Notes under the pieces: generated by a model | Told to the model about the DNA's origin: nothing | Seen by the model: the letters and a program-made list of their open reading frames with translations, nothing else | The model's database searches: none | Shown: positions 1-64,000 of the stretch, piece after piece | Layout of the letters: each line of letters opens with the position of its first letter | Position numbering within the stretch: the stretch's first letter is position 1 | Program-made: the position numbers and the translations under genes | Origin: Isurus oxyrinchus | Lineage: Eukaryota | Assembly (NCBI GenBank): GCA_026770705.1 | Contig: JANJGN010000026.1 | Coordinates: 33,356,001-33,420,000, forward strand | Length of the DNA: 64,000 bases | Reading direction: 5' to 3'

Positions 1-890
1 CTATATTGCCTCGGGTTTCGAGGAATTGAGATGTAATCTCATTTGAAACATGTAATATGGAAGTCAGGGCAGATTCCCGGTGGATGTTTCCCAAGGCTGG
101 AAAGTCTATAACTATGGGTCAAAGTTTCAGAATAAACATTCGGCCATTAGAACTCAGAAGAGGAGAAGTCAAACCATTGTTGTGAATCTGTACCTCAGAG
201 AGCTTTGGATACTCAGTGCTGACTGTACTTAGGACGGTATTCGATAGATCTTTGGATACTAAAAGAATGAAGGGATATGGGGGCACTGCTGTAATGTGAT
301 TTTGAGGATGGAGATCAGCGACGATGTTATTGAATGGCAGAGCAGGTTTGAAAGGTGCTATAGCAGCCTCTCCATCTCTTTGTTAGGTTCTCTGCTTTGA
401 TTTCTTACATTCCTGAGAAATGCAATCAGCAACAATCCACGTCTCTCTAGAACGATTGAACAGGCTGGGCCACTTTTCATTGTAAAAGAGGAAACCGAGG
501 AGATATCAGAGAAACCTTTTAATTATGAATGTGTTCAATCGGGTGGATGTGGAGCAACTGGTAATTTGAGGCTGAGTCCAGAGCAATAGGAGATTATTAT
601 AAGGTAGCCACTAATTGAAAATAAAAGGCATTAAGAAAAATACATTTGCATGAACACGTGTCAGAATGTGGAACTGGAGGTCACATGGAGTGGCTGGAGC
701 AGAGAGCATTGATAGATTTATGGGAAGACTTCAAATTACAAGAGGAAGAGCGGAATAAACAGGCAGAAGGATGTGGACCGAATTGGTCATTTAGATTTCG
801 GGCAGGAAGGGCTGGTTTGGAGTGTAAACATAGGCATCAATCAATTAGGCCGAATGACCTATTCCTCTTCTGCAGATTGTGTATAATGTA
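1..890 (+). mobile_element. Degenerate CR1-type LINE 3' fragments
   Basis: Similar to the CR1-like 3' ends at 21931-22462 and 26150-26590 (e.g. GATCAGC...ATTGAATGGCAGAGCAGG). Confidence 0.6.
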
Positions 891-1806
891 AAACCTTCGA
901 GAATACTCCGCTCAGAGAACCAGGGACAGAATCAGTCAATGAGCGGAAAGAATTGAAATTGTCAGAGAGCCGGAAGAGACAGCTCCCAGTGAGTAACAGG
1001 GAAACCACTGCGGAAACTGAACAGACTGATCCCAACCGACAACTGAGAGAGATTGGGACAAGTTCCCACGATTGCAAAAAGCGCAAACAGCACATTAACG
1101 TAAAATAAAGTGAGAGTAACTGTAAATATTTCAAATTAAAAGGACACGGAGAAATTTGGGCCCTCATGTTAGATGAATATAGAGAAACAGATCAAAAAGT
1201 TGATTGAAACTCCCGAGCAGTGGTCAACTCCAGCAAATGATTAACCTTTGACCACCTATGTTCACTATCGGTTTGGCCCAATCAGTGCTGATGAATCTCA
1301 TCAAGTTATTATGGATCTTGCTTTGATGCTACACAGTTCGGTTAGTCTCGGGCAATCATTTTGGAAACTGATTGCTTCGCTGATAATAAAATGTTCCTTC
1401 TGGAAAAATAGAAACAGAAATGTAATATTCATTACATGCTGCACTGCAGTTGAAATCCGGTCCATCTTGTCGGTGCTGCCCCTCTAAAAATGCAACCCAA
1501 TTATCCCCACTACTCTCTTTCCCCGTAGCCCTGTGTTTTTCCATGTTCCAACATACATCCATTACTCGTTTGGAAACACCCTTAACCAATTTCACCGTCT
1601 GTTCAGACAATGCATGCCAAATAGTAAGAACTCGCTCTGAAACACAAAATAACACCTCATCCTTTCACTGCTTCATATTTCAATAACAGTGAATGAAGTT
1701 AAAGCATGTTATAAATTAAACAAACTCACCCAAAACCAGAGCATCTACTGCGATTAACAAGTTTCCCAGTCTCTAAATAGATTAAGATCAAATTTTTCTC
1801 CTGCAG

Positions 1807-2112
1807 ATTCCAGTTCCATTGTATCCCAGAATCCGCCTGTCCAAACCTCTGCTGTGGGTGACACCGTTACTTTAAGCTGTGAGTATTCAGGTGTCTGTCA
1901 GTACACAGTACACTGGTACCGTCAGTCCCCAGGACAGGCTCCGGATTACTTGCTTCAGAGACATGCTTCAGGAGAAGAGGATAAAGAAAACACTGTTGGG
2001 GGGAGAAGTGCTGCTTCTATCGATCCTGCCGAGAAAATCAGCCGGTTAAATATCTCCAAACTACAACTGAGCGATTCCGCTGGGTATTACTGTGCACTGA
2101 GTCAGCGCACAG
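1807..2112 (+). CDS. TRDV: Leaderless 'supporting' TCR-delta V gene segment of NAR-TCR type, copy 1 (open frame)
   Basis: Acceptor TTTTTCTCCTGCAG ends at 1806 (phase 1). Translation DSSSIVSQNPPVQTSAVGDTVTLSCEYSGVCQYTVHWYRQSPGQAP...LQLSDSAGYYCALSQRT has the canonical C/W/YYC plus an extra CDR1 Cys. No leader exon seen in 1-1806. Followed by a perfect 23-RSS. Confidence 0.9.
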
Positions 2113-2151
2113 CACAGTGATACAGAGCACGGAGGGTGCCATACAAAAACC
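2113..2151 (+). other. 23-RSS (recombination signal sequence)
   Basis: CACAGTG + 23 nt + ACAAAAACC, both consensus. Confidence 0.97.
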
Positions 2152-2170
2152 TGAACATGGAGGGATTAGA

Positions 2171-2209
2171 CACAGTGATAAAGAGCAGGGAGAGAGCTGT
2201 ACAAAACCT
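2171..2209 (+). other. Second tandem 23-RSS
   Basis: CACAGTG + 23 nt + ACAAAACCT; 58-bp tandem duplicate of the first RSS. Confidence 0.85.
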
Positions 2210-4639
2210 GAACATGGTGGGATAACAGACATACGATGACACAGAGTGCAGGGATATTGGGAACTCAAACATTATTCACGAACATTTTCTCAAAGGTTGT
2301 CCGCATTTTACCGCACAGGATAAAGTGCTTAAACTGATCAGGTCTGCATTTCCTTCTCGCTCCTCCCACCCTTGAATTTTCCTCTCTGCCCAATGCTCCT
2401 GTGAATATACTTCATGAAATTATTTCACATTCTCACACTCCATTATTTCCCATGAATCGGTATTTTACCGATTCATAATAACTCAAGTGAGTTTATTGCC
2501 ACCTTTTTCTACGGGGACCGGGAGATTTTTTTCTCTCTCTTGTTTGGTCCAGTCCGCCTTTTACCGATTGAGTTGATAAGAAGTCACCGCCTCCTGTGAT
2601 TTCCCGGATTCTGCCTACGATCGGCTGAGAGATTCTCTCAACTCAACAGGACATTTACTGTCTGTTGGAACCGAAAACTGGGGCACCTCTCGACTAGAAA
2701 GGATTTAGATCCAGACATGTAAGATAGCATTTCCCACAATTGAGCGTAGCTGGGAGTGGCCTCTATCTGTGACACGGACCGCTCTGCACTCGGGACAAAC
2801 GGGCCACACATGCGGACCGGAACAACACAGCCTCTTACAATCGGCCTGTTCTATTTTAATCAACCGCCGCAGCCGCGCAGCGGGTTACCGGCCTCAAACA
2901 TGACCGAAATCAAGTTTTATGATGCTGATCAATGATTTCCCCATAATGGATGACGTCAAAATGCCTTCTATCAGTCACAGCCCATGTTTCACCCAATCAA
3001 CCAGGGCCAGGGGGTCGGGGACCCGTGTGTGGGGGAACAGCCGGGAGTGGGGCGCCTCCAGCTCAGCTGATAGCCTGGGCATAAGAATGGAGGCTATTTG
3101 ACTAAAGGATGTAATCAGGAGCGAAATGGTGCTGGGCAAATAAATTACAACTGTTTCAAAGTCTGGATTTAGCTCAGTTTAGGGCCCCATTGTTCATAAT
3201 TGATATTAGAACATGCCTGGAGGCCGGATGTTACGTCACTATCCGTGTTCTCCTCTGTCTCCCCTGAGCAATTAGAGCTGCTCCGTCTGGTCTCACTACC
3301 TTCTCCCATTCCTCACTTAGATCAAGGGGGCGCTAATAAGATGATTTTGACCAGGTTCTCTCTTTCACCTGGTGACTCCTGTAAAGGGTACAAAGATATG
3401 AAGTCGAGGTAACTCTTTTTAGGCGAGGCCCCCAGAAGAAGTCCAGAATAAGCGTTGTCCACAAGTTGTTCATGCCCTGACAAGGTGTCTCAGGGAGTCT
3501 CCCAATGTGGTTCACTTCACAGGTGCAGCAACAATGAGCATGAAAGGGTGACCCCCTGTCAGTGGCGAGCGTCCCTTTAAACTGCGTTTGCAATTAACAC
3601 CAAGATCGTGTTTTTTCCCCATCACCTGGACTCTGTTGGAGAGTGCTTTACTTGAAGCATTTGCACCAACCGCTGTGCAGCATCTTTAAGTAAAGCGAGC
3701 AGGCATTTTTGCAGCCTCACTGCGGCTCCCAGCTCTGACTTCAACTTCTTTATCGACATTACCTCGTGACCCCGAGTTCCATTACCTCAGTTTGGGGAAA
3801 CTTCCACCCAGTATCTGCCCTGTAAAGCCCCTGAAGAATACTATTTGTGTTCATGAGATCACCTCTCATCCTCTTAAACTCTAGGGATTATAGGCCCGGG
3901 CTACTCAATCTCTTCCCATTGGACAATCCATTCATCTCAGGAATCACCCTGATGCACCTTTGCTGCACTCCTTCCAAATCATCTTGATCTCTCTTCTGTA
4001 AGGACACCAAAACTTTACACAGTATTTCAGACTGGAGTCCATTTCAGTCCTCTCCTGCATAAAACTCACCCAACATCCTGGGGTCGGATTGCACTTTGAA
4101 AGGCGGCTAGAGATCATCCAATCCTTTTCTCCCTTTGGACGAGCTATTTCTTGCTGGTTGTCAATGAACATGCCACCAGTTTCTAATTGTTCCCTTATGT
4201 TCATGTTCTCCTTTATAAGATTAATGCATCATCCTTATTCTCTCACTGCACTATGTTGTTTCCATTAACATTAATCAGGGATACAGATAAATTACAGCAA
4301 TCCCAACTCTCAACATCTGCTTTAAAATAGAGAGAAGTGTCTGCAGTTCCAAACTTTCACGTTTCAGCCTGAGGGCTGAAAAGGAGGAGAGTGATTGGTT
4401 CTACGAAGACAATTGAAAGATATGGCGGGGACAATGTCGCTAATTTCAGTCATTGATTGTCCAATAATAAAATTCCATATTTACCCACATCAGGATCACT
4501 TATATCTGAAGTCCGTTGTGTCACTCTCCCGTTTTTCTCCCGGGTCAGGTATTGAACAAGCCACTGCAGGTATCCAAACTTGCCGCAGTTGTGTTGAGTT
4601 TATTCACCTGGTGCCTCATTCCCATTGTACGGCTTGAGA

Positions 4640-4950
4640 GACTTGCAGCGGTTAACCGTTTACACTGTTCAGTTTCTGAATTCCAAACAGAACGGTTAAA
4701 CGAGTGGTTTCTGCAGTGCGGCCGCCGACAGCTCGAAGACCGTTGATCAGCGGAACCGGTTTTAGTCACGTTGAAATCACACAATGGGACAAAATTAAAA
4801 CACAATTTGCTGGAATTCAGAAATTGAACCGGATTTTATAGAATGAGCTGTTGGCTCTCTCTCTCTCTCTCTCTCTTTGCCTGTCTATTTCTCCCTGCCT
4901 CTATAACTTTCCTTCTTTCCCTGTCTCTGTCTGGGCCTCTCTCCCTTTGT
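4640..4950 (+). repeat. ~300-bp local duplication (second copy ~9205-9510, third ~62632-62935), rich in AACNG motifs
   Basis: Shared TTAACCGTT...CACAATGGGACAAAATTAAAACACAATTTGCTGGAA...TTTTATAGAATGAGC. Confidence 0.85.
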
Positions 4951-5100
4951 CTATTGCATTCTCCTTCCCTTTCTAAATTTCTGTCTTTGTTGTTGTGTCT
5001 CTCAGTTGTCTCTCGCAATCTCTCTCTCTCTCTCTCCCTCTCTCTCTCCCTCTCTCCCTCTTTCTCTCTCACCCCCTCCCGTCTCTCTCGCACACACACT
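4855..5100. repeat. CT-rich microsatellite / low-complexity sequence
   Basis: (CT)n runs. Confidence 0.9.
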
Positions 5101-8100
5101 TTCTGCTCTCTGCGTCAATCTTTGTCTCCATCCTGTGACTCTTTCTGAGTGCCTCGGCATATTTTCCTCCTTTTCTCTCCCTCATCTCTCACTTTCTCTC
5201 TTTCATTCTACTTTCCTTGGCTTTCATGCTCTACTTTCATTGGTTCCAATCGAAAGTGTCACTTTTCCCTTTTTTGTTCAGAATCCGAAATATTCGCAAA
5301 CTTGACTTTCTGTCAATAAAACGTATTAACTTTGGATGCAAATTTACAGCCGGAAAGCGTCGGTTTCTGATTCTGGTGCTGTCAGAGGTGAAGATTCAGT
5401 GTTCACAAAATGAACTCCCACCATTCAGGTTATATGGCAGCCTAGCGATATTTTCCGTACAGTGCCTATATCGGTTTGTATCACTGAATATTCAGCACAC
5501 AATAAAACATCCCACTGTCACTCAGTTCTACATCTTTCAGGATTAAACTGAAAAAATGATCTGATACCCGGAGTGTTGAATAGATTCGGCCGCCCACACG
5601 CTCTGCTTACTGCCCTCCCTCTGAATTCATTTTGATTTTCAGTGTCAGCGCCTTCTCGTTTCTTTTGTGCCAGAAAAGATCATATCGGCGGCGACCTGTG
5701 GAGCTTCAACAGGGCAATACCATTCATCCTTTCTCCAAACATGATACTGATGATGCAGGTTGCTTAATTGTATTTGAATAGTACAGACTTTCGAATAGTC
5801 AATGAACAGAAGACAAATGGATGTTTAGATACTGGAGGCAACAATAAATCCTCGTTCCTTTCCTTCATCGCACCAACATTGTATGAGGCCATTCAGCTCA
5901 TCGTGTCAGTGTAGCCTCTTTGGCAGAGGCACCAAATTGTTCGCACTTCACTGTTCACCCTGCTTTGTCTTGCAAAGGTTTCCATTTCAAGTAGTTACCC
6001 AATTATGTTTTTGACATTTGTTATTGAAACTGCTTCCACCAACCTATCCGGCAGTGCATTCCACAACTCAACAACTTAGAGTGCAAATAAATGGCTGCTC
6101 AGGTTGCCTTTGATTCTTTTGCGAATTAATTCAAATCCAAGTTCCCTGATTACCGAGATTTCCGCCGGTGGATGCAACTTCCCTTATTTATTCAAATAAA
6201 ACAGTTCATAATTGTTAATATCTCCATCGCATGTCCTCTCAATCGTTTCTGTTCAACACAGAACAACCGCAGATTCTCAAGTCGCTCCACAAAGCTAAAG
6301 CCTCTCATCAGTTGAAGCTTCCTAATAAATCTCTCCCGCACCTTCTGCAAGACCGTCAAATCATTCATCAGGTGTGGTTCACATATTTATACACAACAGT
6401 CCAACTGAGAACTTAACAGCTTTCTAGAAATGTTTAGCAAAGCATCCTAATCCTATTGATAAAATCAAGAATTTAAATTCATTTTTACAGCAGTCCCAGC
6501 CTCCACTACCAACTTCAAACGTTTGTGCACTTTGCAAAGTCTCCATCTCTCTGTTCCGACAGCGCCAATGAACTTGCATCATTATGTTCATATCGGATAT
6601 CCTCATCACCTTCAGGCATGAAGAAAGTCAAACAGATAGGTGAGCAAAAAGTATCTGGAGAGGTGCAGAAGGGCTAACTGCAAGATACAGAACCATATGT
6701 AGATAACTGTTGAATACCTTTGACAGAATGCACATCACTTAACTTGCTGGGATTGGGGGGTCTGGTGGTTGGGGGTTCCAAACAATTACATATTGTGTGG
6801 AGTCAGGATGTCACATCGGAAAGACAGGGATAGTTTTTTTTGTACGGGCCTCTCGTTGTCTGGTGACGTTCTGTTTCCTAGAACCTAGCTATCCACAGTG
6901 CTGTCAGACAACTTCGCCTAGTGAATGGTTAAATGGACCGTTCTTGCAGCTTTATGTAAGGTAGCACATATCACATGCTTCCCAAAGATGTTTGTTATGA
7001 CTTGGCAGGCCTGGATGTGTGCCAGACGGACCAAACCCACAAGGGAAACTTGGCCACGTTATCACAGTTTTGCAATTTGTTTTTATTCCGAGAAGTTTTG
7101 TGCACTGAATTCAGAAGTAATGAGCCTACTGGAACCTTTAGAGATTTTTTAAAAACCATATTTAAACATATATTAACAACAGGAAATATTTCAAACACAC
7201 ACACATACGTTTAGAGTTGCTGAGTACTATAACAAATATCAAACTTCCTAATTTACCTGATTTCAACCTGCACACACCTATTGGGGAAATATTCTAAAAT
7301 AGATTTTAAATTAAAATAAATACAAGCAAGCAAGGTTAGCAAAGGACACACTCGACAGCAGAATTCCAAAGGCTTTTACCCAACTTTAGCTCCTCGACAC
7401 AGTTGACGTTTGCTCACATGGTTAGAGGCTTCCCCAAGGCTATTTCACACACTCCTGATGGATCTTACATACTTCCTGAAACACGGGCCCCATTACCTCA
7501 GTGGGTTGAATGATTGTGAATATCGGTGTCAAGCAGATGAAAGGCAGCATGTTATCAGATTAAGAAACACACCAGCAACAGAGGCTCAGGCCCACAGCAA
7601 AAACTTCATAAATCCTGAACAATATGGTATTGGGCACAATCCACCCTCCGAGTGAACAGTGGAGTTACATGAGTCAGCCGCCTGAAAAATTCAAAGGAAT
7701 TTAAATCTCTGCGATCCATGTGTGGAAATGGCAGCTTCGATGACAGGCTGACAGGTTGTTCGACATATGTCAATTTCCATTACCCCCCGAATCAACATCA
7801 CTGAAGCAGATCACCAGGTCATTATCACCTTGTTCTTTGTGGGAGCTTGAGGTGGTAAATTGCCTGCCATGTTTCCCACATAAAGACACTCCAAAGCCTT
7901 CTTTGGTTGTAAAGTGCTTTTTAAAGTTCTGATGTCATGAAAGGCACTGTATAAATACATGTTCTTCTTTCCTTATTGTTCTTGAGAGGCATTTTGAGAA
8001 TCAGAGCCAGAAGATGGGGTTGAGTTCTTTATACTAAGTGCAGTGTTAAACGTTACAATAAAACTCACCATCTGGACTCTCTCTCCCTCTGTATTTTACT

Positions 8101-12604: not shown

Positions 12605-13075
12605 GGGTTTTTTACAGCGACAGATGAGTTTTAAACCAGTGTGTTGCGGCTGTGTCCTGGATTTCCGCTCAAGTGATCGTTAGAGGAAACTTCTTTCCTT
12701 CGTTAGTCTGACCCGCCTCGGATATCCCTTTGGTAAAATCTGCATCTCTTTTACTGCTTCTATCTCGATACAAAATAAAATCGGAACCTGATTCGTGTGC
12801 TGTCTGTACCAGTACAGGCCGGGATTACTATGATTTGTTGTGTAGCTACAGTCTATTTTCTTGCTGTCTCCTTCAGTAACATGCAGTGTGGTCTGAGGTT
12901 GGGACACAGAATCTGCCTGAATCAAACCTGAAATAAAACGTAACGAAAAACGAATGCAATACTGAGTTTAAAAGTCTATTAACATCACATAACTGCAAAC
13001 GGATAAAATGATGTGGCTGCACCTACCGAACATCAGCCACAATAAAATCAGATGACGATGTGGCATAAGCCACAT
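12605..13075 (-). pseudogene. TCR alpha/delta V pseudogene
   Basis: Leader MWLMPHRHLILLWLMF (13075-13027, GTAGGT donor). V exon from 12927 reads LIQADSVSQPQTTLHVTEGDSKKIDCSY...LYWYRQ, then frameshifts and a stop; YYC is deleted. RSS CACACTG-23-AAAAAACCC. Confidence 0.9.
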
Positions 13076-14416: not shown

Positions 14417-14991
14417 GATGATTTATACGGAGTAGAGCGGCTTTGAAACACTGTGACCCTCAATCCGCAGAAATAGATGGTGCTGTCTTTAGGCTCTGCT
14501 GCAGAAATTGACAAAGGAAAAACTTGATATTGACGGAAATGACGAGCATCGAATTTTCCGTTCCAAACTCGCATCCCTGCGCCTGGTTTTATCATAGTAC
14601 AACAGAGACTGGGATGCCTGGTTCGGGCACAGCCGGTACCAGCAGCAACCCGGATCATGAGAACTGGAGTTGTATTTACAGTTCAAAAACGGATTATCTC
14701 CCTCATGTACCTTCAACTCATATTGACTCTGCATTACCGAACTCCCTTGGGTTTTATCTGTAAAATAATATAGAAACTTCAGTTAACACACTTACTGGTT
14801 ACGAACATTCCAGTCCACAATTATGGTATAACTATTATAAGGGACATTTGGATAATTCACACTAGAGAAAGAAAGACATTTTAAAATTTACAGATTACAA
14901 GGGGTAGAATGATAAGTCATATCAACACAGGGCTCACATGTCCCAGTATACCTATTACAAAGGAGATCAGGAACAGCTCAACAGCCGTCAT
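14417..14991 (-). pseudogene. TCR alpha/delta V pseudogene
   Basis: Leader MTAVELFLISFVI (14991-14952). V exon from 14757 reads DKTQGSSVMQSQ...LNCKY...WYR, frameshift, then ...FPLSISAAEPKDSTIYFCGLRV. CACAGTG heptamer (14455-14449) with a degenerate nonamer. Confidence 0.9.
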
Positions 14992-38414: not shown

Positions 38415-38643
38415 ATGTAAGAAATAAAAAGAGAGAAAAAAAACTGAGAGAACTCCAGACACCATCTACTGCCTCATCCAATCTATTGCTGAAACTCTGA
38501 CGATCAGTCCCTTCACCACCTCCAGACTCCAATTATTCCAAATTAGTTGCTAACTGTTCGACATCCAATGTTGCATTGAACATTTGTCAACACAGAGGAC
38601 ATTACAATCAGTTCTGGTCACAAACTCTGCCCTCTATCCACTG

Positions 38644-39142
38644 CGCCTCGTCTTCCACACTCAGGCCGCTTATATTGAGATAACCGGACTGTTTAGTCTT
38701 GTCAGCAGCCGCCAGATATCGTCCTGAGATTTCATCTTTTCTCAGTCCTACTACTTTGGTAATTATCCAGCTTGGAGGCTGTGCCGATTTATGCCGATAC
38801 CATTGCATAATGTCTATAGCCTGGTCTGTATATTCGCAATCTAACTGCACCGAACCCCCTTCTGACACGGTTAACATCACTGGGGTCTGAGTTACTGGAT
38901 CGGCACACAGTCCGCCTGTGAAAATAGAGAAACAGAAGAGTATACGGTTAAAGAGGATCCATCTAAACATCTAAATAACTGCGCAAATTCCCATGAACAA
39001 AGCTGTTCATAATATGTATACATCTGCTCGTTAATCCTATTAATTGCTAGTGCAAACCCTTTGCCTCAATCTGCTAATGTGTTTTGATTAACATAATCCA
39101 GTACTTACTGCCCCAGACAGCCGCCAGTATAATCAGAAACAT
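38644..39142 (-). pseudogene. TCR alpha/delta V, 3'-truncated (no YYC, no RSS)
   Basis: Leader MFLIILAAVWG (39142-39109, GTAAGT); V exon from 38915 GLCADPVTQTP...LDCEY...MQWYRH...GLSVEDEA, open until the breakpoint. Confidence 0.92.
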
Positions 39143-40456: not shown

Positions 40457-41000
40457 ATGGGGAACCGTTTCGCTTTTTCCTCATCATTATGTCACTTCTC
40501 AGTAAATATTTCCTTCCCCATGAATAATTCGTTTCTTCTAATTACTGTAACACAGATGTTGTTCTTGACAAAGCAATAATGATGGTGATGGTGATGATTA
40601 TGTTGATCAATATGAGGCTGATACTGATTGTTGTTATTGCTATTGTCTTATGTTAGACTGGAGCCACCAAGACATAGTGGAACTGCCGGTTGCTGCAATA
40701 ACGTTTGACGAGAAAAGTAATAATACAGTAGCTTGCACATTGAAAACAAGCACTGCTAACCATTATGTGTACTGGTACAGTCAGCGCCCCGAGCAGCCTC
40801 CACAGTACATGCTTTATATTCTGGGAGGGAAACCATTCAGAAATAAGGACATCAGTGATCGGTTTTCAGCAATGTTTAATGAAACTGTAAAGATTACCGA
40901 ACTCATGATCAGTAACATCCTGATCTCTGACAGCGCGGTATATTTCTGTGCGATGGACCCCACACTGCTGCAGAGATATAGCGGATACCGTACAAAAACC
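40457..41000 (+). pseudogene. TCR alpha/delta V with open V exon (40657-40960) but out-of-phase leader (ORF or pseudogene)
   Basis: V reads DWSHQDIVELP...VACTL...VYWYSQRPEQPPQYML...SDSAVYFCAMDP. Leader 40457-40501 is 45 nt (phase 0) against a phase-1 acceptor. RSS CACACTG-24-ACAAAAACC. Confidence 0.85.
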
Positions 41001-41810: not shown

Positions 41811-42132
41811 GCAGACTATGCGCACATCCAGTAACTGAGGCACCGGTTGCAATAACGGTGTCAGAAGGGGGTTCGTTGCAGTTAGACTGTGAATATAGAG
41901 AACGGAATATGTACTACATGCAATGGTATCGGCAGCACGACGGCCCAGCCCGCAAACTGGATTATTACCAATATCATAGCACTGAAGAAAGATGAAATTT
42001 CAGGACGATATCTGGCGGCTGCTGACCAGTCTCAAAAGAACGGTTACCTCAAAATCAGCCAATTGAGTGTGGAGGACGAGGCGGTTTATTACTGTGCAGT
42101 GAGGCACAGAGTTAGAATCCTGTAAAACAACC
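41811..42132 (+). pseudogene. TCR alpha/delta V pseudogene (family of 38644-39142); no leader found
   Basis: RLCAHPVTEAP...LDCEY...MQWYRQH, frameshift, ...QLSVEDEAVYYCAVR; CACAGAG-12-AAAACAACC. Confidence 0.9.
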
Positions 42133-42822: not shown

Positions 42823-43754
42823 ATGCGAATCTCCGTTCTCGCTGTGATCTGGGTGACATTCGTTGTCGGCAAGAAATTTAAAACATTTTTAAAGAAGGCT
42901 TCAGTTTCTGGAGGGATAAATATGAAGAAAAAGACTGGGGAATTCATGTTAATCAAGCGCTGGACCTACGTTAGAGTGCACTTAAGTTATTGTCTGCAGA
43001 CTTGGTATCTTCCTTATAAGAAGAATAAAGAAACATAAAACACAGTGTAAAAATTAATTACAATGCTGATGCCAGAATTGAGAGATAATAACTCTCGAAG
43101 AACACTGAAGAGACTGGGCGTATTTCCTCGAGTAATCAGAAGACTGATGGGTAACCGGATAGAGCTCTTTAACATGAGGAGAGGTTTCGATCGGGAAGAT
43201 ATGGGAAAGATGCATACAGTTGAGGAGAATTCCAAAACTTTGGCTCATAAATAAGAGTCACAGAAAGACCCAAAGGGGAATTCATGAGAAACTTCTTTCT
43301 CCTTTAGAATATGGAATTCACTGTCAGAAGGAGGAGATGAGCAAAATTTTCAGTGTCAGTTCTTTTTAGTCGAACTTTTAGTCGATGGTTTCCGTTTTCA
43401 TTAACCGTGTCTTCCAGATCTGATCCATGGAGATTCTGTTACTCACGCCGAATCCTCACAGGCAGTGGGAAAAGATGTCATTTTAACGTGCACCTATACT
43501 GACGATGTTTATTACTATTTCTGGTACCAGCAAGGCCCAGGCATACAGTCCGAGTTTGCAATCTGCAGGCACAAGAGCGGCAGTTGTGAACTGAAGGCAG
43601 ATTTCGCTCAGGACCGGTATTCTGATACAGTCCACCAGTTAGGCAAGTTGTATCGATTGACCATCTCGGAGCTGCAGCTGTCTGACACCACGGTCTATTA
43701 GTGTGCACAGAGTCTCACAGCGATGGAACCGAGCGGAACCCTCGTACAACAACT
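42823..43754 (+). pseudogene. TCR alpha/delta V pseudogene
   Basis: Leader MRISVLAVIWVTFVV (42823-42868, GC donor); V exon from 43418 DLIHGDSVTHAES...LTCTY...FWYQQ...LQLSDTTVY*CAQS with TAG inside YYC; RSS CACAGCG-23-ACAACAACT. Confidence 0.92.
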
Positions 43755-44767: not shown

Positions 44768-45343
44768 TATTTCTGATAATACTGACAGCTGTCTTGGACT
44801 GTCAATGCTGGATTATGTTCATCATTAAAATAAACAAATTAACACATTGATCCAATTGCAGCTTGTACAGGTATTCAATGTTGTTAGCGATCCTGTATAT
44901 GCATATTATGGACAGTTAGGTAGGTGGGAATTTACATAAACGCATACAGCTAAACACAGGTTTAGATCGATCCGGTTTAACCTCCTGGATTTTGTTCCTC
45001 TAACTTCACAGGTGGACTATGTGCAGATGCAGTAACACAGTCTCTGGTGACACTGGCCGTGTCAGAAGGGGATTTAGTGAAGTGAGACTGCGGATATAAA
45101 ACCCTGTATTTATACATCATGTAACAGTATTGGCAGAAACCGGCACAGCCTCCAAGCTGGATCATTAGCAAAGCAGCAGCACTGAAGGGATTGAAAATCT
45201 GAGAACGATATCTGGCTGCTGCTGACCAGGCTGCACAGCCCGATTACCTCAATGTAAGCAGCCTGGGTGTGGAGGACCGGGCGGTCAACTCATGTGCAGC
45301 GAGACACAATGTCAGATAAAATCGAAGAACCCGGACAGTAAGC
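44768..45343 (+). pseudogene. TCR alpha/delta V pseudogene (family of 38644-39142)
   Basis: Leader with ATG>ATA; V exon from 45012 GLCADAVTQSLVTLAVSEGDLVK*DCGY with several stops; RSS CACAATG-23-ACAGTAAGC. Confidence 0.88.
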
Positions 45344-46775: not shown

Positions 46776-46911
46776 NNNNNNNNNNNNNNNNNNNNNNNNN
46801 NNNNNNNNNNNNNNNNNNNNNNNNNNNNNNNNNNNNNNNNNNNNNNNNNNNNNNNNNNNNNNNNNNNNNNNNNNNNNNNNNNNNNNNNNNNNNNNNNNNN
46901 NNNNNNNNNNN
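46776..46911. other. Assembly gap (N run)
   Basis: 136 N. Confidence 1.
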
Positions 46912-50320: not shown

Positions 50321-50811
50321 ATGCATCTACTCGGCACTTTGGTTCTTTGGGGATTATTGATCACAGGCAATTGTGGACTTAACATCAAGTCAACTTTGCT
50401 CCCGTTTCCTCCTCATGGTTCAAGTCATGTTTTAATCAGCCACCGTTCATATATTGCCTGATTTTGTTTTGTTTTCAGATCTCTGCGATGGAGATTCAGT
50501 CACTCAGCCGCTGCCCCCGCGTGTTAAGGCAGAAGGAGAACCGGTGACACTGACCTGTAGCTACAATCATACAGCAAGCAGGTATAGTCTATTCTGGTAC
50601 CAACAACACCCAGACACACATCCCTAGTATACGCTCAGAAAGGATAGTGATGGTGATGAATTTAAAGCAGATTTTGCTGAAACTCTCTTCTTTTCTGACC
50701 TTCAAATCTCCAACAAAATCATCTACTTATCCATCAGCGGGTCTGCAGTGTATTACTGCGCTTTCTGGCACTCATAGTGACAGAATGCAGCCTCACCCCT
50801 GTACAAGAACT
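50321..50811 (+). pseudogene. TCR alpha/delta V pseudogene
   Basis: Leader MHLLGTLVLWGLLIT (50321-50366, GC donor); V exon from 50479 DLCDGDSVTQP...VTLTCSY...LFWYQQHPDTHP*...SISGSAVYYCAFWH (stop plus FR3 deletion); RSS CATAGTG-23-ACAAGAACT. Confidence 0.92.
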
Positions 50812-52779: not shown

Positions 52780-53807
52780 CGAGGCTCTCCGTTCTCGCTG
52801 TAGCCTGGGGGCATTCATTGTCGATAAGAGGATGAAACGTTTATAAAAAAGAATATTAATTTCTGGATGAATCAATGTGAAAAGCAGAGAGTTAATGTAA
52901 TCCTTTTACCGACCGATTGTTGGACCACATTTGCAGTATTACCAAAAGGAGATAGAAAATCAGGAGGAATAATTGGAGAGGATGGGGTTGTTCTTCCCAG
53001 TTAAGTCAGGACTGAGGGACAAGGTGGGAGAGATCTGTAAATGGCTGAAGGAGTTTGATGGGGTTGAAATGGAAAATCTTTCCACATGTCACAGATTATA
53101 AAGCTACGAGCCACAAATACAGGAGTGGGAAAAGTTATCCAAAGTGGGATTCAGGAGAAGGTTTATTCCCATGGAACGGTTAAAGTGTTGAATTCACCTT
53201 CACAAAGAGGGTTTCGGGTGAATAGTATCCCTAATATAATTGGACAGGTGCTGGGGGAATGAAGAGAAGGATATGTTGAGAGAGAAAATGAAGAGTGATG
53301 GAAGGTACTCCTGGTGATTGTAAACACCCACAGACACCAGTTGTGCCCAATAACCTTTTCTATCATCTGAATTATATCTACATCAATATAACACTGTCTG
53401 TGAACTATTGCTGTCAGTTCAGTTCAATTGAAGTAATACTCTCTGATTTCCTCTTCCTTTGACCGTGTGTTCCAGATCTGAGCGATGGAGATTCTGTTAC
53501 TCAGCGCGAATCCTCGCTCACACAGGCAGAGCGAGAAGATGTCGCTTTAACCTGCATCTTTACCGGCGATGGTTATTACTTATCCTGGTGCTGTCAATAC
53601 CCAGACAGACAGCCCGAATTTGCACTCCAGAGACACATGGGCGGTGATTCTGAATTTAAGGCGGATTTTGCTTAGAGCCGGTTTTCTGATACATTCCAGC
53701 AGACAGACAGATTGTACCGATTGACCTTCTCGGAGCTGCGGCTGTCTGACACCGCAGTATATTACTGTGCACTGAGTCTCATAGCGATTGTTCCTCGTTC
53801 AATAACT
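52780..53807 (+). pseudogene. TCR alpha/delta V pseudogene, paralog of 42823-43754
   Basis: Decayed leader (CTCCGTTCTCGCTGT...GTCG|ATAAGA); V exon from 53476 DLSDGDSVTQRESS with frameshifts and stops, ending LRLSDTAVYYCALS; CATAGCG-12-TCAATAACT. Confidence 0.9.
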
Positions 53808-55694: not shown

Positions 55695-56281
55695 AAGACA
55701 AGTGTTATTCGTGGGAGCGTTGCTGAGCTGGAAGTCAGTGAATAGAAGCAGCTCGAGCTGCGCTGCAGCCAGTGTCCTCATTGTGGGAATAGTTCAGCTG
55801 CTAGAGACCGGTGTTGGGCATAAGAGTCCGGTACGTTCATTAGGGACTGTCTCGATGTCCTGGGCCCACATCCCACCTTTAACAAACACCACCCAATACG
55901 AACTCATGCACCGACCTCCCGGTTCATCACTGTGGGGTAAGGAGGGCGGCAGCACAACTGGCAGAAAGAAAAGCTCCCTACCCCCAGCCCTGTACAACAG
56001 CGTATTGTGGGAGGGGATTTCACATCCGGATCACAATCCCAATGTAGAGTCAGAAAATTGCAGCCTCCTTTTATAAACCTGTCTCTTATTCACAAAACAT
56101 TTAGCCAGCGAGCCGAGAACCGTCCGGCCCATCAATGATCTCAGCTAAGCTGCCCTTTGTAAATCAACTCGATCCCCTAAGGTGTTTCAGTCCAGCCCTG
56201 AAGTCCGGTCTCCCAGGGCAGTCCAGGGCTGCAGTCTCCAGCTCCCCATCACATAAACCCCCAGCTCTAGGCAGCAGAGCG

Positions 56282-56749
56282 ATGGGAATCCTCTTTGTTT
56301 TCACCCTGTGTGTCTGTATACCCCGTGAGTACCGATCAAACAAACCGACATTGTGTGGGTTTAATATAAAGCTGCTCGAGTCCATCCCAATTACAGACAA
56401 TGTCTGCGGGTTTAACCCCGCTCCGTGGTTCGGCTCTGATGGTCCATTACACTCTCTCTGTTTAATTTCCAGGCTCTTTCAGTCAGTCAGTGACACAGAC
56501 CCCAGCAGCGGTGACCAGGAAGGAGTGTCAGTCTCTCATCATCACCTGTGTTTATTATGGTTATTATTATTTACAAAATGGACATTTCTTCAAACAAACC
56601 CAGACCGGGACAGAGTGGGAGAGGATCTCCAGCGGGGAGAGATTTGTTGTGTCGGTGAATAAAGCAGGAAAGACATTTTCGGGACGTGAGAGTTGAAGAC
56701 ACCGCCAACTATTACTGTAAAGCTCAGTACAGATACAACATTGGTTAAT
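56282..56749 (+). pseudogene. NAR-TCR V (IgNAR-like V) with leader; frameshifting deletion in FR3
   Basis: Leader MGILFVFTLCVCIP (56282-56324, GTGAGT). V exon from 56473 reads SFSQSVTQTPAAVTRKECQSLIITCVYYGYYYLQNGHFFKQTQTGTEWERISSGERFVVSVNKAGKTFS/RDVRVEDTANYYCKAQ. The short domain lacks CDR2, and the ERISxGxR..VNK..K.FS and VED...CKA motifs are VNAR-like; extra FR1 Cys. Confidence 0.88.
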
Positions 56750-56777
56750 CACAGAGGAAAAGGCCTGAACAAATAGC
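56750..56777 (+). other. 12-RSS 3' of the NAR-type V
   Basis: CACAGAG + GAAAAGGCCTGA (12) + ACAAATAGC. Confidence 0.7.
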
Positions 56778-57091
56778 TCTGTACAATTAAAATATATATT
56801 CTCCGGGCCCAGATAGTGAATTGTCGGGTTGATGTTATCATCGCTGGAATCTGATTACGTTTTATTGTAATTTCCACCATTCCATTATCTTTCTTTGATA
56901 TTTGTCTCGGTTTATATGAAGCGAACATCTCGTTCCCTGGACCAGTTACTCAGCGCTCAGGGCCTCACAAAGCACAGTGTGAGCCGGCAGACATTTTGAA
57001 ACATTGAATATTGTTTATTTTTTTCAATCCGCTGAATATATGGCAGTATCTAATGTCTGGTGATGATTTCCCGCCAGGTTGAGTTGTCGGT

Positions 57092-57130
57092 GGTTCTTGT
57101 GCCGGGGAGACTGAGAGCAGTGTTACTGTG
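57092..57130 (-). other. 23-RSS 5' of J
   Basis: GGTTCTTGT + 23 nt + TACTGTG (+ strand reading). Confidence 0.9.
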
Positions 57131-57183
57131 GTGGAAATATGATTCTGTGGATGGATCCGGTACGATGTTGACTGTCATAGCCG
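57131..57183 (+). CDS. NAR-TCR J segment
   Basis: WKYDSVDGSGTMLTVIA + G|GTAAGT; GxGT-xLTV motif; phase-1 donor matches the acceptor at 59798. Confidence 0.88.
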
Positions 57184-59798
57184 GTAAGTGACTCCAGCCA
57201 CCCTCCCCCTCACACCTGTTGCGGCCTGTCCTAGCTAATGTTCACCCGCTGCTTTTTATTGTGATCAGCGTCAGTTCAGTCCCACGAAAAGGAAAACAGA
57301 TGGTTTTCATAAGGAAACCTCTCTGTTGGCTTTTTCGATTTGGGGGCAGAATATTATTCAGGAGCCGGGTCGAATGTCTAGGTGAAACTATGTGTGAGAT
57401 CTGTCAGACTAGGCGGTCAACGGGATCAGGGTGGGTGGAGGATGGAGTGTGGGGACGTGAGGGAGGGGATTTTAAGTTTGGAGGAGCATGAGGGTTCGCT
57501 GCATCTGAACCATTATTAGTTTCACTGGTACATCGGGGGCCATCAATCCCTCTGATTCACAATCCTAATCATTTGTAAGTTTGGAATTGCTAACATTTAT
57601 CTCTTTTGAATGTAGATTTTTGAGATACTGGATTGCTTTAATTTATCTGTATCTGTGATTTCTGCAAATTAGAACAACACAGAGCAGTGGGAGAGTGAGG
57701 ATGATGCACTGAACTACTGGAAGGGAACAGGAACATAAGAGAACAATAATCATCGAAATCAAGAGAAAGGTTGGATGATTTCTGGGGGCCGTTCAAAATT
57801 CTTCCTGGCACGAGGGTGGGGGGTGAGGTTTATGGAGGGAAAGGCTGCAATGGGTCCAGTCTGGAATGCTAGGTAAACGCTTGGCCTCTTTGTTAGGGAA
57901 AGATCTAAATCCTTTGGAGTGAGTGCAACAAAGTTTCATCAGACTGATTGCTGAGATAAAGTCTTACGAGAAGAGATTGAGTTGTCTGGGTCTATTTTGC
58001 CCTGGGTTTCGAGGAATTGAGATGTAATCTCATTTGAAACATGTAATATGGAAGACAGGGCAGATTCCCGGTGGATGTTTCCCAAGGCTGGTAAGTCTAT
58101 AAATATGGGTCAAAGTTTCAGAATAAACATTCGGCCATTAGAACTCAGAAGAGGAGAAGTCAAACCATTGTTGTGAGTCTGTACCTCAGAGAGCTTTGGA
58201 TACTCAGTGCTGACTGTACTTAGGACGGTATTCGATAGATCTTTGGATACTAAAAGAATGAAGGGATATGGGGGCACTGCTGTAATGTGATTTTGAGGAT
58301 GGAGATCAGCGACGATGTTATTGAATGGCAGAGCAGGTTTGAAAGGTGCTATAGCGGCCTCTCCATCTCTTTGTTAGGTTCTCTGCTTTGATTTCTTACA
58401 TTCCTGAGAAATGCAATCAGCAACAATCCACGTCTCTCTAGAACGATTGAACAGGCTGGGCCACTTTTCACTGTAAAAGAGGAAACCGAGGAGATATCAG
58501 AGAAACCTTTTAATTATGAATGTGTTCAATCGGGTGGATGTGGAGCAACTGGTAATTTGTGGCTGAGTCCAGAGCAATAGGAGATTATTATAAGGTAGCC
58601 ACTAATTGAACATAAAAGGCATTAAGAAAAATACATTTGCATGAACACGTGTCAGAATGTGGAACTGGAGGTCACATGGAGTGGCTGGAGCAGAGAACAT
58701 TGATAGATTTATGGGAAGACTTCAAAATACAAGAGGAAGAGCGGAATAAACAGGCAGAAGGATGTGGACCGAACTGGTCATTTAGATTTCGGGCAGGAAG
58801 GGCTGGTTTGGAGTGTAAACATAGGCATCAATCAGTTAGGCCGAATGGCCTATTCCTCTTCTGCAGATTGTGTATAATATAAAACCTTCGAGAATACTCC
58901 GCTCAGAGAACCAGGGACAGAATCAGTCAATGAGCGGAAAGAATTGAAATTGTCAGAGAGCCGGAAGAGACAGCTCCCAGTGAGTAACAGGGAAACCACT
59001 GCGGAAACTGAACAGACTGATCCCAACCGACAACTGAGAGAGATTGGGACAAGTTCCCACGATTGCAAAAAGCGCAAACAGCACATTAACGTAAAATAAA
59101 GTGAGAGTAACTGTAAATATTTCAAATTAAAAGGACACGGAGAAATTTGGGCCTTCATGTTAGATGAATATAGAGAAACAGATCAAAAAGTTGATAGAAA
59201 CTCCCGAGCAGTGGTCCACTCCAGCAAATGATTAACCTTTGACCACCTATGTTCACTATCGGTTTGGCCCAATCAGTGCTGATGAATCTCATCAAGTTAT
59301 TATGGATCTTGCTTTGATGCTAAACAGTTCGGTTAGTCTCGGGCAATCATTTTGGAAACTGATTGCTTCGCTGATAATAAAATGTTCCTTCTGGAAAAAT
59401 AGAAACAGAAATGTAATATACATTACATGCTGCACTGCAGTTGAAATCCGGTCCATCCTGTCGGTGCTGCCCCTCTAAAAATGCAACCCAATTATCCCCA
59501 CTACTCTCTTTCCCCGTAGCCCTGTGTTTTTCCATGTTCCAACATTTATCCATTACTCGTTTGGAAAACACCCTTAACCAGTTTTACCGTCTGTTCAGAC
59601 AATGCATGCCAAATAGTAAGAACTCGCTCTGAAACACAAAATAACACCTCATCCTTTCACTGCTTCATACTTCAATAACAGTGAATGAAGTTAAAGCAGG
59701 TTATAAATTAAACAAACTCACCCAAAACCACAGCATCTACTGCGATTAACAAGTTTCCCAGTCTCTAAATAAATTAAGATCAAATTTTTCTCCTGCAG

Positions 59799-60104
59799 AT
59801 TCCAGTTCCATTGTATCCCAGAATCCGCCTGTCCAAACCTCTGCTGTGGGTGACACCGTTACTTTAAGCTGTGAGTATTCAGGTGTCTGTCAGTACACAG
59901 TACACTGGTACCGTCAGTCCCCAGGACAGGCTCCGGATTACTTGCTTCAGAGACATGCTTCAGGAGAAGAGGATAAAGAAAACACTGTTGGGGGGAGAAG
60001 TTCTGCTTCTATCGATCCTGCCGAGAAAATCAGCCGGTTAAATATCTCCAAACTACAACTGAGCGATTCCGCTGGGTATTGCTGTGCACTGAGTCAGCGC
60101 ACAG
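59799..60104 (+). CDS. TRDV: Leaderless supporting TCR-delta V, copy 2 (open frame; YYC>YCC)
   Basis: Near-identical to 1807-2112; lies 2.6 kb downstream of the NAR-type J with no leader in between. Confidence 0.9.
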
Positions 60105-60201
60105 CACAGTGATACAGAGCACGGAGGGTGCCATACAAAAACCTGAACATGGAGGGATTAGACACAGTGATAAAGAACAGGGAAAGAGCTGTACAAAACC
60201 T
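60105..60201 (+). other. Two tandem 23-RSS (60105-60143 and 60163-60201)
   Basis: CACAGTG-23-ACAAAAACC and CACAGTG-23-ACAAAACCT. Confidence 0.9.
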
Positions 60202-63200
60202 GAACATGGTGGGATTACAGACATACAATGACACAGAGTGCAGGGATATTGGGAACTCAAACATTATTCACGAACATTTTCTCAAAGGTTGTCCGCATTT
60301 TACCGCACAGGATAAAGTGCTTAAACTGATCAGGTCTGCATTTCCTTCTCGCTCCTCCCACCCTTGAATTTTCTTCTCTGCCCAATGCTCCTGTGAATAT
60401 ACTTCATGAAATTATTTCACATTCTCACACTCCATTATTTCCCATGAATCGGTATTTTACCGATTCATAATAACTCAAGTGAGTTTATTGCCACCTTTTT
60501 CTACGGGGACCGGGAGATTTTTTTCTCTCTCTTGTTTGGTCCAGTCCGCCTTTTACCGATTGAGTTGATAAGAAGTCACCGCCTCCTGTGATTTCCCGGA
60601 TTCTGCCTACGATCGGCTGAGAGATTCTCTCAACTCAACAGGACATTTACTGTCTGTTGGAACTGAAAACTGGGGCACCTCTCGACTAGAAAGGATTTAG
60701 ATCCAGACATGTAAGATAGCATTTCCCACAATTGAGCGTAGCTGGGAGTGGCCTCTATCTGTGACACGGACCGCTCTGCACTCGGGACAAACGGGCCACA
60801 CATGAGGACTGGAACAACACAGCCTCTTACAATCGGCCTGTTCTATTTTAATCAACCGCCGCAGCCGCGCAGCGGGTTACCGGCCTCAAACATGACCGAA
60901 ATCAAGTTTTATGAAGCTGATCAATGATTTCCCCATAATGGATGACGTCAAAATGCCTTCTATCAGTCACAACACATGTTTCACCCAATCAACCAGGGCC
61001 AGGGGGTCGGGGACCGGTGGGTGGGGGAACAGCCGGGAGTGGGGCGCCTCCAGCTCAGCTGATAGCCTGGGCATAAGAATGGAGGCTATTTGACTAAAGG
61101 ATGTAATCAGGAGCGAAATGGTGCTGGGCAAATAAATTACAACTGTTTCAAAGTCTGGATTTAGCTCAGTTTAGGGCCCCATTGTTCATAATTGATATTA
61201 GAACATGCCTGGAGGCCGGATGTTACGTCACTATCCGTGTTCTCCTCTGTCTCCCCTGAGAAATTAGAGCTGCTCCGTCTGGTCTCACTACCTTCTCCCA
61301 TTCCTCACTTAGATCAAGGGGGCGCTAATAAGATGATTTTGACCAGGTTCTCTCTTTCACCTGGTGACTCCTGTAAAGGGTACAAAGATATGAAGTCGAG
61401 GTAACTCTTTTTAGGCGAGGCCCCCAGAAGAAGTCCAGAATAAGCGTTGTCCACAAGTTGTTCATGCCCTGACAAGGTGTCTCAGGGAGTCTCCCAATGT
61501 GGTTCACTTCACAGGTGCAGCAACAATGAGCATGAAAGGGTGACCCCCTGTCAGTGGCGAGCGTCCCTTTAAACTGCGTTTGCAATTAACACCAAGATCG
61601 TGTTTTTTCCCCATCACCTGGACTCTGTTGGAGAGTGCTTTACTTGAAGCATTTGCACCAACCGCTGTGCAGCATCTTTAAGTAAAGCGAGCAGGCATTT
61701 TTGCAGCCTCACTGCGGCTCCCAGCTCTGACTTCAACTTCTTTATCGACATTACCTCGTGACCCCGAGTTCCATTACCTCAGTTTGGGGAAACTTCCACC
61801 CAGTATCTGCCCTGTAAAGCCCCTGAAGAATACTATTTGTGTTCATGAGATCACCTCTCATCCTCTTAAACTCTAGGGATTATAGGCCCGGGCTACTCAA
61901 TCTCTTCCCATTGGACAATCCATTCATCTCAGGAATCACCCTTATGCACCTTTGCTGCACTCCTTCCAAAGCATCTTGATCTCTCTTCTGTAAGGACACC
62001 AAAACTTTACACAGTATTTCAGACTGGAGTCCATTTCAGTCCTCTCCTGCATAAAACTCACCCAACATCCTGGGGTCGGATTGCACTTTCAAAGGCGGCC
62101 AGAGATCATCCAATCCTTTTCTCCCTTTGGACGAGCTATTTCTTGCTGGTTGTCAATGAACATGCCACCAGTTTCTAATTGTTCCCTTATGTTCATGTTC
62201 TCCTTTATAAGATTAATGCATCATCCTTATTCTCTCACTGCACTATGTTGTTTCCATTAACATTAATCAGGGATACAGATAAATTACAGCAATCCCAACT
62301 CTCAACATCTGCTTTAAAATAGAGAGAAGTGTCTGCAGTTCCAAACTTTCACGTTTCAGCCTGAGGGCTGAAAAGGAGGAGAGTGATTGGTTCTACGAAG
62401 ACAATTGAAAGATATGGCGGGGACAATGTCGCTAATTTCAGTCATTGATTGTCCAATAATAAAATTCCATATTTACCCACATCAGGATCACTTATATCTG
62501 AAGTCCGTTGTGTCACTCTTCCGTTTTTCTCCCGGGTCAGGTATTGAACAAGCCACTGCAGGTATCCAAACTTGCCGCAGGTGTGTTGAGTTTATTCACC
62601 TGGTGCCTCATTCAAATTGTACGGCTTGAGAGACTTGCAGCTGTTAACCGTTTACACTGTTCAGTTTCTGAATTCCAAACAGAACAGTTAAACGAGTGGT
62701 TTCTGCAGTGCGGCCGCCAACAGCTCGAAGACCGTTGATCAGCCGAACCGGTTTTAGTCACGTTGAAATCACACAATGGGACAAAATTAAAACACAATTT
62801 GCTGGAATTCAGAAATTGAACCGGATTTTATAGAATGAGCTGTTGGCTCTCTCTCTCTCTCTTTGCCTGTCTATTTCTCCCTGCCTCTATATCTTTCCTT
62901 CTTTCCCTGTCTCTGTCTGGGCCTCTCTCCCTTTGTCTATTGCATTCTCCTTCCCTTTCTAAATTTCTGTCTTTGTTGTTGTGTCTCTCAGTTGTCTCTC
63001 GCAATCTCTCTCTCTCTCTCTCCCTCTCTCTCTCCCTCTCTCCCTCTTTCTCTCTCACCCCTTCCCGTCTCTCTCGCACACACACTTTCTGCTCTCTGCG
63101 TCAATCTTTGTCTCCATCCTGTGACTCTTTCTGAGTGTCTCGGCATATTTTCCTCCTTTTCTCTCCCTCATCTCTCACTTTCTCTCTTTCATTCTACTTT

Positions 63201-64000
63201 CCTTGGCTTTCATGTTCTACTTTCATTGGTTCCAATCGAAAGTGTCACTTTTCCCTTTTTTGTTCAGAATCCGAAATATTCGCAAACTTGACTTTCTGTC
63301 AATAAAACGTATTAACTTTGGATGCAAATTTACAGCCGGAAAGCGTCGGTTTCTGATTCTGGTGCTGTCAGAGGTGAAGATTCAGTGTTCACAAAATGAA
63401 CTCCCACCATTCAGGTTATATGGCAGCCTAGCGATATTTTCCGTACAGTGCTTATATCGGTTTGTATCACTGAATATTCAGCACACAATAAAACATCCCA
63501 CTGTCACTCAGTTCTACATCTTTCAGGATTAAACTGAAAAAACGATCTGATACCCGGAGTGTTGAATAGATTCGGCCGCCCACACGCTCTGCTTACTGCC
63601 CTCCCTCTGAATTCATTTTGATTTTCAGTGTCAGCGCCTTCTCGTTTCTTTGGTGCCAGAAAAGATCATATCGGCGGCGACCTGTGGAGTTTCAACAGGG
63701 CAATACCATTCATCCTTTCTCCAAACATGATACTGATGATGCAGGTTGCTTAATTGTATTTGAATAGTACAGACTTTCGAATAGTCAATGAACAGAAGAC
63801 AAATGGATGTTTAGATACTGGAGACAACAATAAATCCTCGTTCCTTTCCTTCATCGCACCAACATTGTATGAGGCCATTCAGCTCATCGTGTCAGTGTAG
63901 CCTCTTTGGCAGAGGCACCAAATTGTTCGCACTTCACTGTTCACCCTGCTTTGTCTTGCAAAGGTTTCCATTTCAAGTAGTTACCCAATTATGTTTTTGA

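Follow-up and report, generated by a model that had tools for sequence, protein, structure and literature searches.

The closest described relatives of the locus discussed here are the NAR-TCR delta genes of cartilaginous fish, reported by Criscitiello, Saltis and Flajnik in 2006 and summarised in PMC1845163, PMC5931798 and PMC12227049. In these T-cell receptor (TCR) genes a leader and a V like that of IgNAR (a VNAR-like V), with a J of its own, lie upstream of a leaderless V-delta that carries its own recombination signal sequence (RSS), and the cassettes reside within the TCR alpha/delta V array. For the outer V of nurse shark and elephant shark PMC1845163 lists a leader, a cysteine in the a-b loop and no tryptophan in the WYRK motif; for the NAR-TcR-associated V-delta it lists the lack of a leader and a cysteine in the first complementarity-determining region (CDR1). 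TCR-mu of marsupials and monotremes is likewise a two-V TCR chain with an antibody-like, somatically diversified outer V, but it is independent in origin, its outer V is related to VH and it occupies a separate locus (PMC3457774).

Our subject is a locus of Isurus oxyrinchus in a stretch of 64,000 nucleotides, referred to below as the window (contig JANJGN010000026.1, positions 33,356,001 to 33,420,000, forward strand). Its sequence identifies the cassette that begins at position 56282 as a germline NAR-TCR (double-V TCR delta) cassette, set in the shark TCR alpha/delta V array; it belongs to the known family by descent and layout and is not a new kind. The preliminary description had called it complete. 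The kind, the anatomy and the coordinates have stood, completeness has not, because the exon of the outer V (NAR V) is frameshifted by an 11-nucleotide deletion. The whole is, in our opinion, probably best explained as a decayed germline NAR-TCR cassette with a D-less arrangement, V with a 12-spacer RSS and J with a 23-spacer RSS, and with an orphaned supporting V.

Anatomy and family membership of the cassette

All parts lie on the forward strand. The leader exon (L-part1, 56282..56324) encodes a typical leader peptide, MGILFVFTLCVCIP, and ends in phase 1 at a GTGAGT donor (56325); the peptide is nearly identical to the leaders of the gene models P0003 (MGILLVFSLCVCLP) and P0004. A leader intron of 148 nucleotides (56325..56472) closes with the acceptor ...tttaatttccag|g, and 56472|56473, preceded by a pyrimidine tract and AG, is the only acceptor compatible with both the phase-1 leader and the V frame. 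The NAR-TCR-type V exon follows (56473..56749), with a 12-RSS directly behind it (56750..56777; CACAGAG - 12 - ACAAATAGC, heptamer 6/7, nonamer 7/9). Then comes a 23-RSS (57092..57130; GGTTCTTGT - 23 - TACTGTG, nonamer 8/9, heptamer 6/7) and the NAR J segment itself (57131..57183), which reads WKYDSVDGSGTMLTVIA, compares with DGSGTVVTVTA of the gene models and DGAGTVLTVN of VNAR 7spo_C, and ends in phase 1 at a GTAAGT donor (57184). The intron behind it (57184..59798, 2615 nucleotides) contains interspersed repeats, with no V-like exon and no tblastn V match between 57183 and 59801. The leaderless supporting V-delta exon (59799..60104; (D)SSSIVSQNPPVQ...YCCALSQRTA) starts at the acceptor 59798|59799, behind ttttctcctgcag, in phase with the NAR J donor. 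Across 57183|59799 the reading frame is kept, and the codon divided between the exons, g|at, encodes D in ...TVIA-D-SSSIVSQNPP.... Behind the supporting V stands a perfect 23-RSS (60105..60143; CACAGTG - 23 - ACAAAAACC), with which it could be rearranged separately. Of these elements the preliminary description had already named the leader exon, the RSS-flanked J with its phase-1 donor, the V exon after a 2.6-kb intron with its phase-1 acceptor and perfect 23-RSS, and the junction ...TVIA-DSSS..., and each of them is indeed read in the sequence or its translation.

What kind of V the outer one is was addressed by searching the exons singly against databases. With the first 70 residues of the NAR V, matches in the PDB are to VNAR chains only (E 8e-10 to 1e-5), nearly gapless, and the next fold class, TCR alpha chains, appears at E 0.4; a Pfam search with the same 70-residue piece gave no match at E up to 0.1. 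In sequence terms the NAR V has the short, CDR2-less VNAR-type fold, as had been claimed for it. A full HMMER pass with the NAR V over 1.84 billion representative proteins returned 28 hits, the top 14 of which are cartilaginous-fish proteins, 41-79% identical to it. In most of these 14, which are gene models, the J-like DGSGTVVTVTA comes after this V, then DS.S..S..PP.QTS and a second, TCR-type V; three are single-V fragments. The best matches (E 3e-25 to 1e-9) are two-V models from nine genera (Heterodontus, Scyliorhinus, Mustelus, Cetorhinus, Hemiscyllium, Chiloscyllium, Rhincodon, Callorhinchus and Pristis); the IgNAR of Triakis scyllium reaches just E 3e-5 with 46% identity in the same search. 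The model XP_078058183.1 of Mustelus asterias continues through a constant domain to a transmembrane end.

We reconstructed a maximum-likelihood tree of 30 V domains, including 12 outer V domains of two-V models and four IgNAR V, in which the broken V was entered with X at the break. In it the NAR V of the window is nested among the 12 outer V domains, in a clade (95/99) that leaves out the four IgNAR V, and a clade with support of 100/99 unites every NAR-type V domain. This bears out the expectation that the V groups with NAR-TCR V. The hallmark residues point the same way. The a-b loop cysteine is present (56526-56528, VTRKECQSL), where IgNAR has KETGESL, that is Gly and not Cys, and the Trp of WYRK, which IgNAR V keeps, is replaced by Phe (56586-56588); GHFFKQT aligns to SWFRK of VNAR, and FF[RK]Q or a similar motif occurs in all reference NAR-TCR V domains. 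With the IgNAR V (Triakis scyllium BAJ20185.1; PDB 7spo_C) our V shares the short fold without C'-C'' strands and the J motif DG.GT.LTV, but it is just 41-46% identical to it, and IgNAR V is followed by three D segments, J and C exons, whereas here a V exon follows the J.

The supporting V is no less characteristic. It matches Pfam V-set (6.5e-16) and has the CDR1 cysteine (59887-59889, GVCQY; YSGVCQYTVHWY), which is common to the supporting V of every two-V model that we examined except that of Callorhinchus (P0013). In the tree the window's two copies of the supporting V group with their counterparts from the models, those of Cetorhinus being the nearest; the support that sets this group apart from ordinary V is weak (59/78). 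A scan for phase-1 exons running from ATG to GT found nothing credible up to 900 bp upstream of the supporting V or of its paralog, and a clear leader upstream of the NAR V; the claim that the downstream V has no leader of its own is thus upheld over that distance.

Identity to RefSeq two-V models such as XP_067869961.1 (Heterodontus francisci), XP_078392284.1 and XP_078425937.1 (Cetorhinus maximus) and XP_078058183.1 (Mustelus asterias) is 59-79% for the NAR V and about 85% for the supporting V. The junction ...DGSGT..TV.A|DS.S..S..PP is shared with them, and so is, in several two-V models, the end CALSQRTAQ-stop inside the RSS heptamer. The tree, the hallmark residues of PMC1845163, the layout and the J|DSSS junction conserved in gene models of nine species show that NAR-TCR is the right kind.

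Three further observations belong to these parts. The stretch of about 130 nucleotides before the leader ATG (upstream region or 5' untranslated region, 56150..56281) reads through as RCFSPALKSGLPGQSRAAVSSSPSHKPPALGSRA, a peptide resembling RKHFSPALRSSLPEQSRTAVSSSPSYKPSAPGSRT, the N-terminal extension of model P0007 from Heterodontus francisci, and 56150-56281 may accordingly contain a promoter or 5' untranslated region that NAR-TCR cassettes conserve. In the best DNA run the summed contig depth over the NAR V exon (56468-56735) is about 20 times that over its flanks, as would be expected if related NAR V copies formed a large family. Within the intron, 58303-58337 (within 58210-58343) is a very high-copy interspersed repeat.

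The frameshift and its alternatives

From 56475 the NAR V exon translates as SFSQSVTQTPAAVTRKECQSLIITCVYYGYYYLQNGHFFKQTQTGTEWERISSGERFVVSVNKAGKTFSGRES-stop. The frame changes between ...KTFS and DVRVEDTANYYCKAQ, so that the conserved domain end DVRVEDTANYYCKAQ is found in the +1 frame. At 56677/56678, a site between short TTC repeats (56677..56681), 11 nucleotides are lost, corresponding to the conserved stretch FS-LEIR-DV, and a TGA then follows in the leader/V reading frame (56694-56696). The motif FSL.I.D is kept in all 12 of 12 reference NAR-TCR V domains (extracted from gene models). In run X20, from the same organism (organism A), a contig covers 56471-57258 at 98.7% identity and inserts TTCACTGGAAA behind 56677, and its extra 11 letters restore KTFS-LEIR-DVRVED. 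The contigs of organism B (runs X13 and X5) depart from the window at 56681 and continue with CTGGAAATTCGAGATTTGAGAGT, the intact reading. The RefSeq two-V models are open through FSLEIRDVRVED, unlike our copy. An open reading frame through the NAR V exon, the mark of a functional member, is therefore not found here, and the in-frame double-V chain that had been proposed cannot be produced from the assembled copy.

Because the deletion shifts the NAR V frame and brings a stop four codons later, this copy, although a member by descent, reads as a pseudogene as assembled and is probably dead; its supporting V, having no leader of its own, reads as orphaned in the same assembly. We think it quite likely that the deletion is real in the animal.

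That judgement depends in part on the relation of the cassette to a second copy in the window. Positions 57992-64000 are a 98.6-98.7% copy of 1-6009, that is, a tandem unit with a period of 57,991 bp, although a haplotype placed in tandem may be an alternative to a duplication. Two replacements set the paralogous supporting V (1809-2108) apart from ours: one is Ala/Ser at 60002, the other Tyr/Cys at 60081, where a G turns the YYC motif into YCC in this copy. The letters that mark our copy are A at 56622, T at 60002 and G at 60081. Substitutions account for 37 of the 39 differences between the copies, which argues for real divergence rather than for the error of noisy reads.

Several points weigh against our reading and should be stated together. 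Among the public contigs on the stretch, the deleted form is absent from every independent run that we examined, and one contig of single-copy depth begins 7 unmatched letters before 56678. The DNA-like runs X1 (the best DNA run), X13 and X5 read the other copy's letter at six of the listed sites where the copies differ, so that this copy alone has its letters and no independent source shows them; since minority paths are dropped from Logan contigs, the missing letters do not show absence. The deletion could then be an artefact of assembly or of haplotypes. As to use of the cassette, a joint for the 57183|59799 splice or for a V-J join occurs in none of the contigs of any run (no run is on record as RNA). 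In run X20, which we guess to be RNA, one contig spans V, spacer and J, all in germline form, while the supporting V is not covered. The J-to-V splice does occur in relatives from other species, though in gene models that are computational predictions, and its support comes solely from its conservation in such models of nine species.

The strongest alternative takes up exactly these points. The cassette would be intact and functional in the animal, the 11-nucleotide gap being an assembly error, or the 58-kb "copies" would be two haplotypes placed in tandem, with the broken V as one allele. Besides the lack of the deleted form in public contigs and the absence of the private letters from X1, X13 and X5, organism A does have an intact form whose letters at 56854 and 56884 are like those of the window. 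We nevertheless consider this alternative unlikely. Absence from Logan contigs proves nothing, since they drop minority variants; the copies differ mainly by substitutions and not by the indels typical of read error; the deletion sits between short direct repeats, as slippage deletions do; and the same copy carries the damaging Y-to-C change in the YYC motif of its supporting V.

It is much less probable still that the supporting V continues in use from another leader, for example through the NAR VJ exon of an upstream cassette or from a distant leader that we failed to recognise. In its favour, neither the exon nor its acceptor nor its perfect RSS is damaged, and the cassettes stand in a tandem array. 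Against it, no leader-like exon lies within 900 bp upstream, an upstream cassette's own supporting V intervenes, the change at 60081 hints at relaxed constraint, and the one possible RNA run (X20) has no RNA contig over the supporting V.

Finally, that we are dealing with the V of an IgNAR cluster, or with an ordinary TRAV/TRDV that happens to lie 3' of an unrelated V and J, accounts for the VNAR-like V and can practically be dismissed on tree, residues and layout: the V is in the NAR-TCR clade and not with IgNAR, its Cys and missing Trp are the opposite of IgNAR V, no D1-D3 or C exons follow it, its J splices in phase into a V exon with the junction peptide DS.S..S..PP.QTS conserved in nine species, and the locus is a TCR V array.

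Rearrangement signals and the surrounding V array

The published NAR-TCR genes are described as undergoing separate VDJ rearrangements for both domains (PMC1845163, PMC5931798, PMC12227049). In this respect our cassette departs from them, for it has no D, and the 12-RSS of its V faces the 23-RSS of its J, with compatible spacers. The RSS scan found no D segment flanked by a pair of RSSs anywhere from 56778 to 57091; the CACAGTG near 56973 was considered as the RSS of a D and rejected, there being no nonamer at 12 or 23 nucleotides. The near-identical X20 contig has the same D-less V-J layout. The YYC of the NAR V ends at 56718, the V itself ends 32 nucleotides past its Cys codon, and a TAA lies 1 nucleotide before the heptamer.

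In shark clusters of the IgH type, V has a 23-RSS, D a 12-RSS on its 3' side and J a 23-RSS. Given that arrangement, a V with a 12-RSS would agree with V and D having fused in the germline long ago. We tentatively propose, giving the idea somewhat less than an even chance, that a subfamily of NAR-TCR lost its separate D through such an ancient germline fusion, so that the 12-RSS of the former D faces the 23-RSS of the J and the outer domain is joined in one step, and that this subfamily also has a conserved tandem double RSS.

The perfect form CACAGTG-23-ACAAAAACC occurs twice in the 64 kb, each time directly behind a supporting V. A second, tandemly duplicated RSS-like site (60163..60201; CACAGTG - 23 - ACAAAACCT) follows the first, so that two such sites stand in tandem behind the supporting V, 58 bp apart (60105-60223), and the same doublet is found behind the paralog, at 2113 and 2171 (2113-2231). 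The read-through C-termini of the models of Hemiscyllium (P0005: ...RTLIQGTERAVQNLEH...DTVMHSWKRAFKNLNM) and Rhincodon (P0010) look like the same doublet. The tandem double RSS may be conserved across shark orders (epaulette and whale sharks), as far as such models can tell. Neither the D-less 12/23 layout nor the tandem double RSS is described in the papers that we read.

The window as a whole is a TCR alpha/delta V array and holds 1.1 units of the 57,991-bp repeat, so that a further NAR V with its J is probably situated immediately before its start. About a dozen V segments were located by tblastn with local V domains, most of them with stops or frameshifts. Ordinary TCR V segments of this damaged sort lie at 5490-5768, 12685-12871, 14461-14704 and 38638-38895 on the reverse strand, and at 41822-42104, 43462-43713, 45068-45298, 50499-50765 and 53496-53777 on the forward strand. 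The only ordinary V that looks intact is at 40674-40958 (forward strand), with a 24-spacer RSS at 40961. From these readings, this stretch of the array is made up largely of pseudogenes. A V at 41.9 kb was considered as a second NAR-like short V and rejected, tblastn showing it to be an ordinary V with a frameshift. Positions 46776-46911 are a run of 136 N, either a gap or a mask.

Proposed working of intact cassettes and meaning of this one

In an intact cassette of this layout, the RAG recombinase would join the NAR V, through its 12-RSS, straight to its own J with the 23-RSS, without a D, and the leaderless V-delta downstream would be joined separately to D-delta and J-delta through its 23-RSS. 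A single transcript would start at the NAR leader and be spliced from leader to VJ, from the NAR J donor to the supporting-V acceptor, both in phase 1, and from J-delta to C-delta. The product would be an unpaired VNAR-like domain atop a V-delta, with the cysteine of the NAR a-b loop and that of the V-delta CDR1 probably linked by a disulfide. In the copy described here the same course would end within the outer domain, at the premature stop, even though the J, the splice sites, the supporting V and the RSSs read as intact.

Taken alone this copy matters little. It is one decayed copy in a large tandem family, and NAR-TCR, known since 2006, is shared by all cartilaginous fish, with models of it already included in RefSeq genomes. 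Its lesson is one for annotation, namely that perfect-looking signals can accompany a dead cassette and that a leaderless V falls silent when the NAR V in front of it is lost. The D-less 12/23 layout and the doubled RSS offer small leads on how these cassettes diversify.

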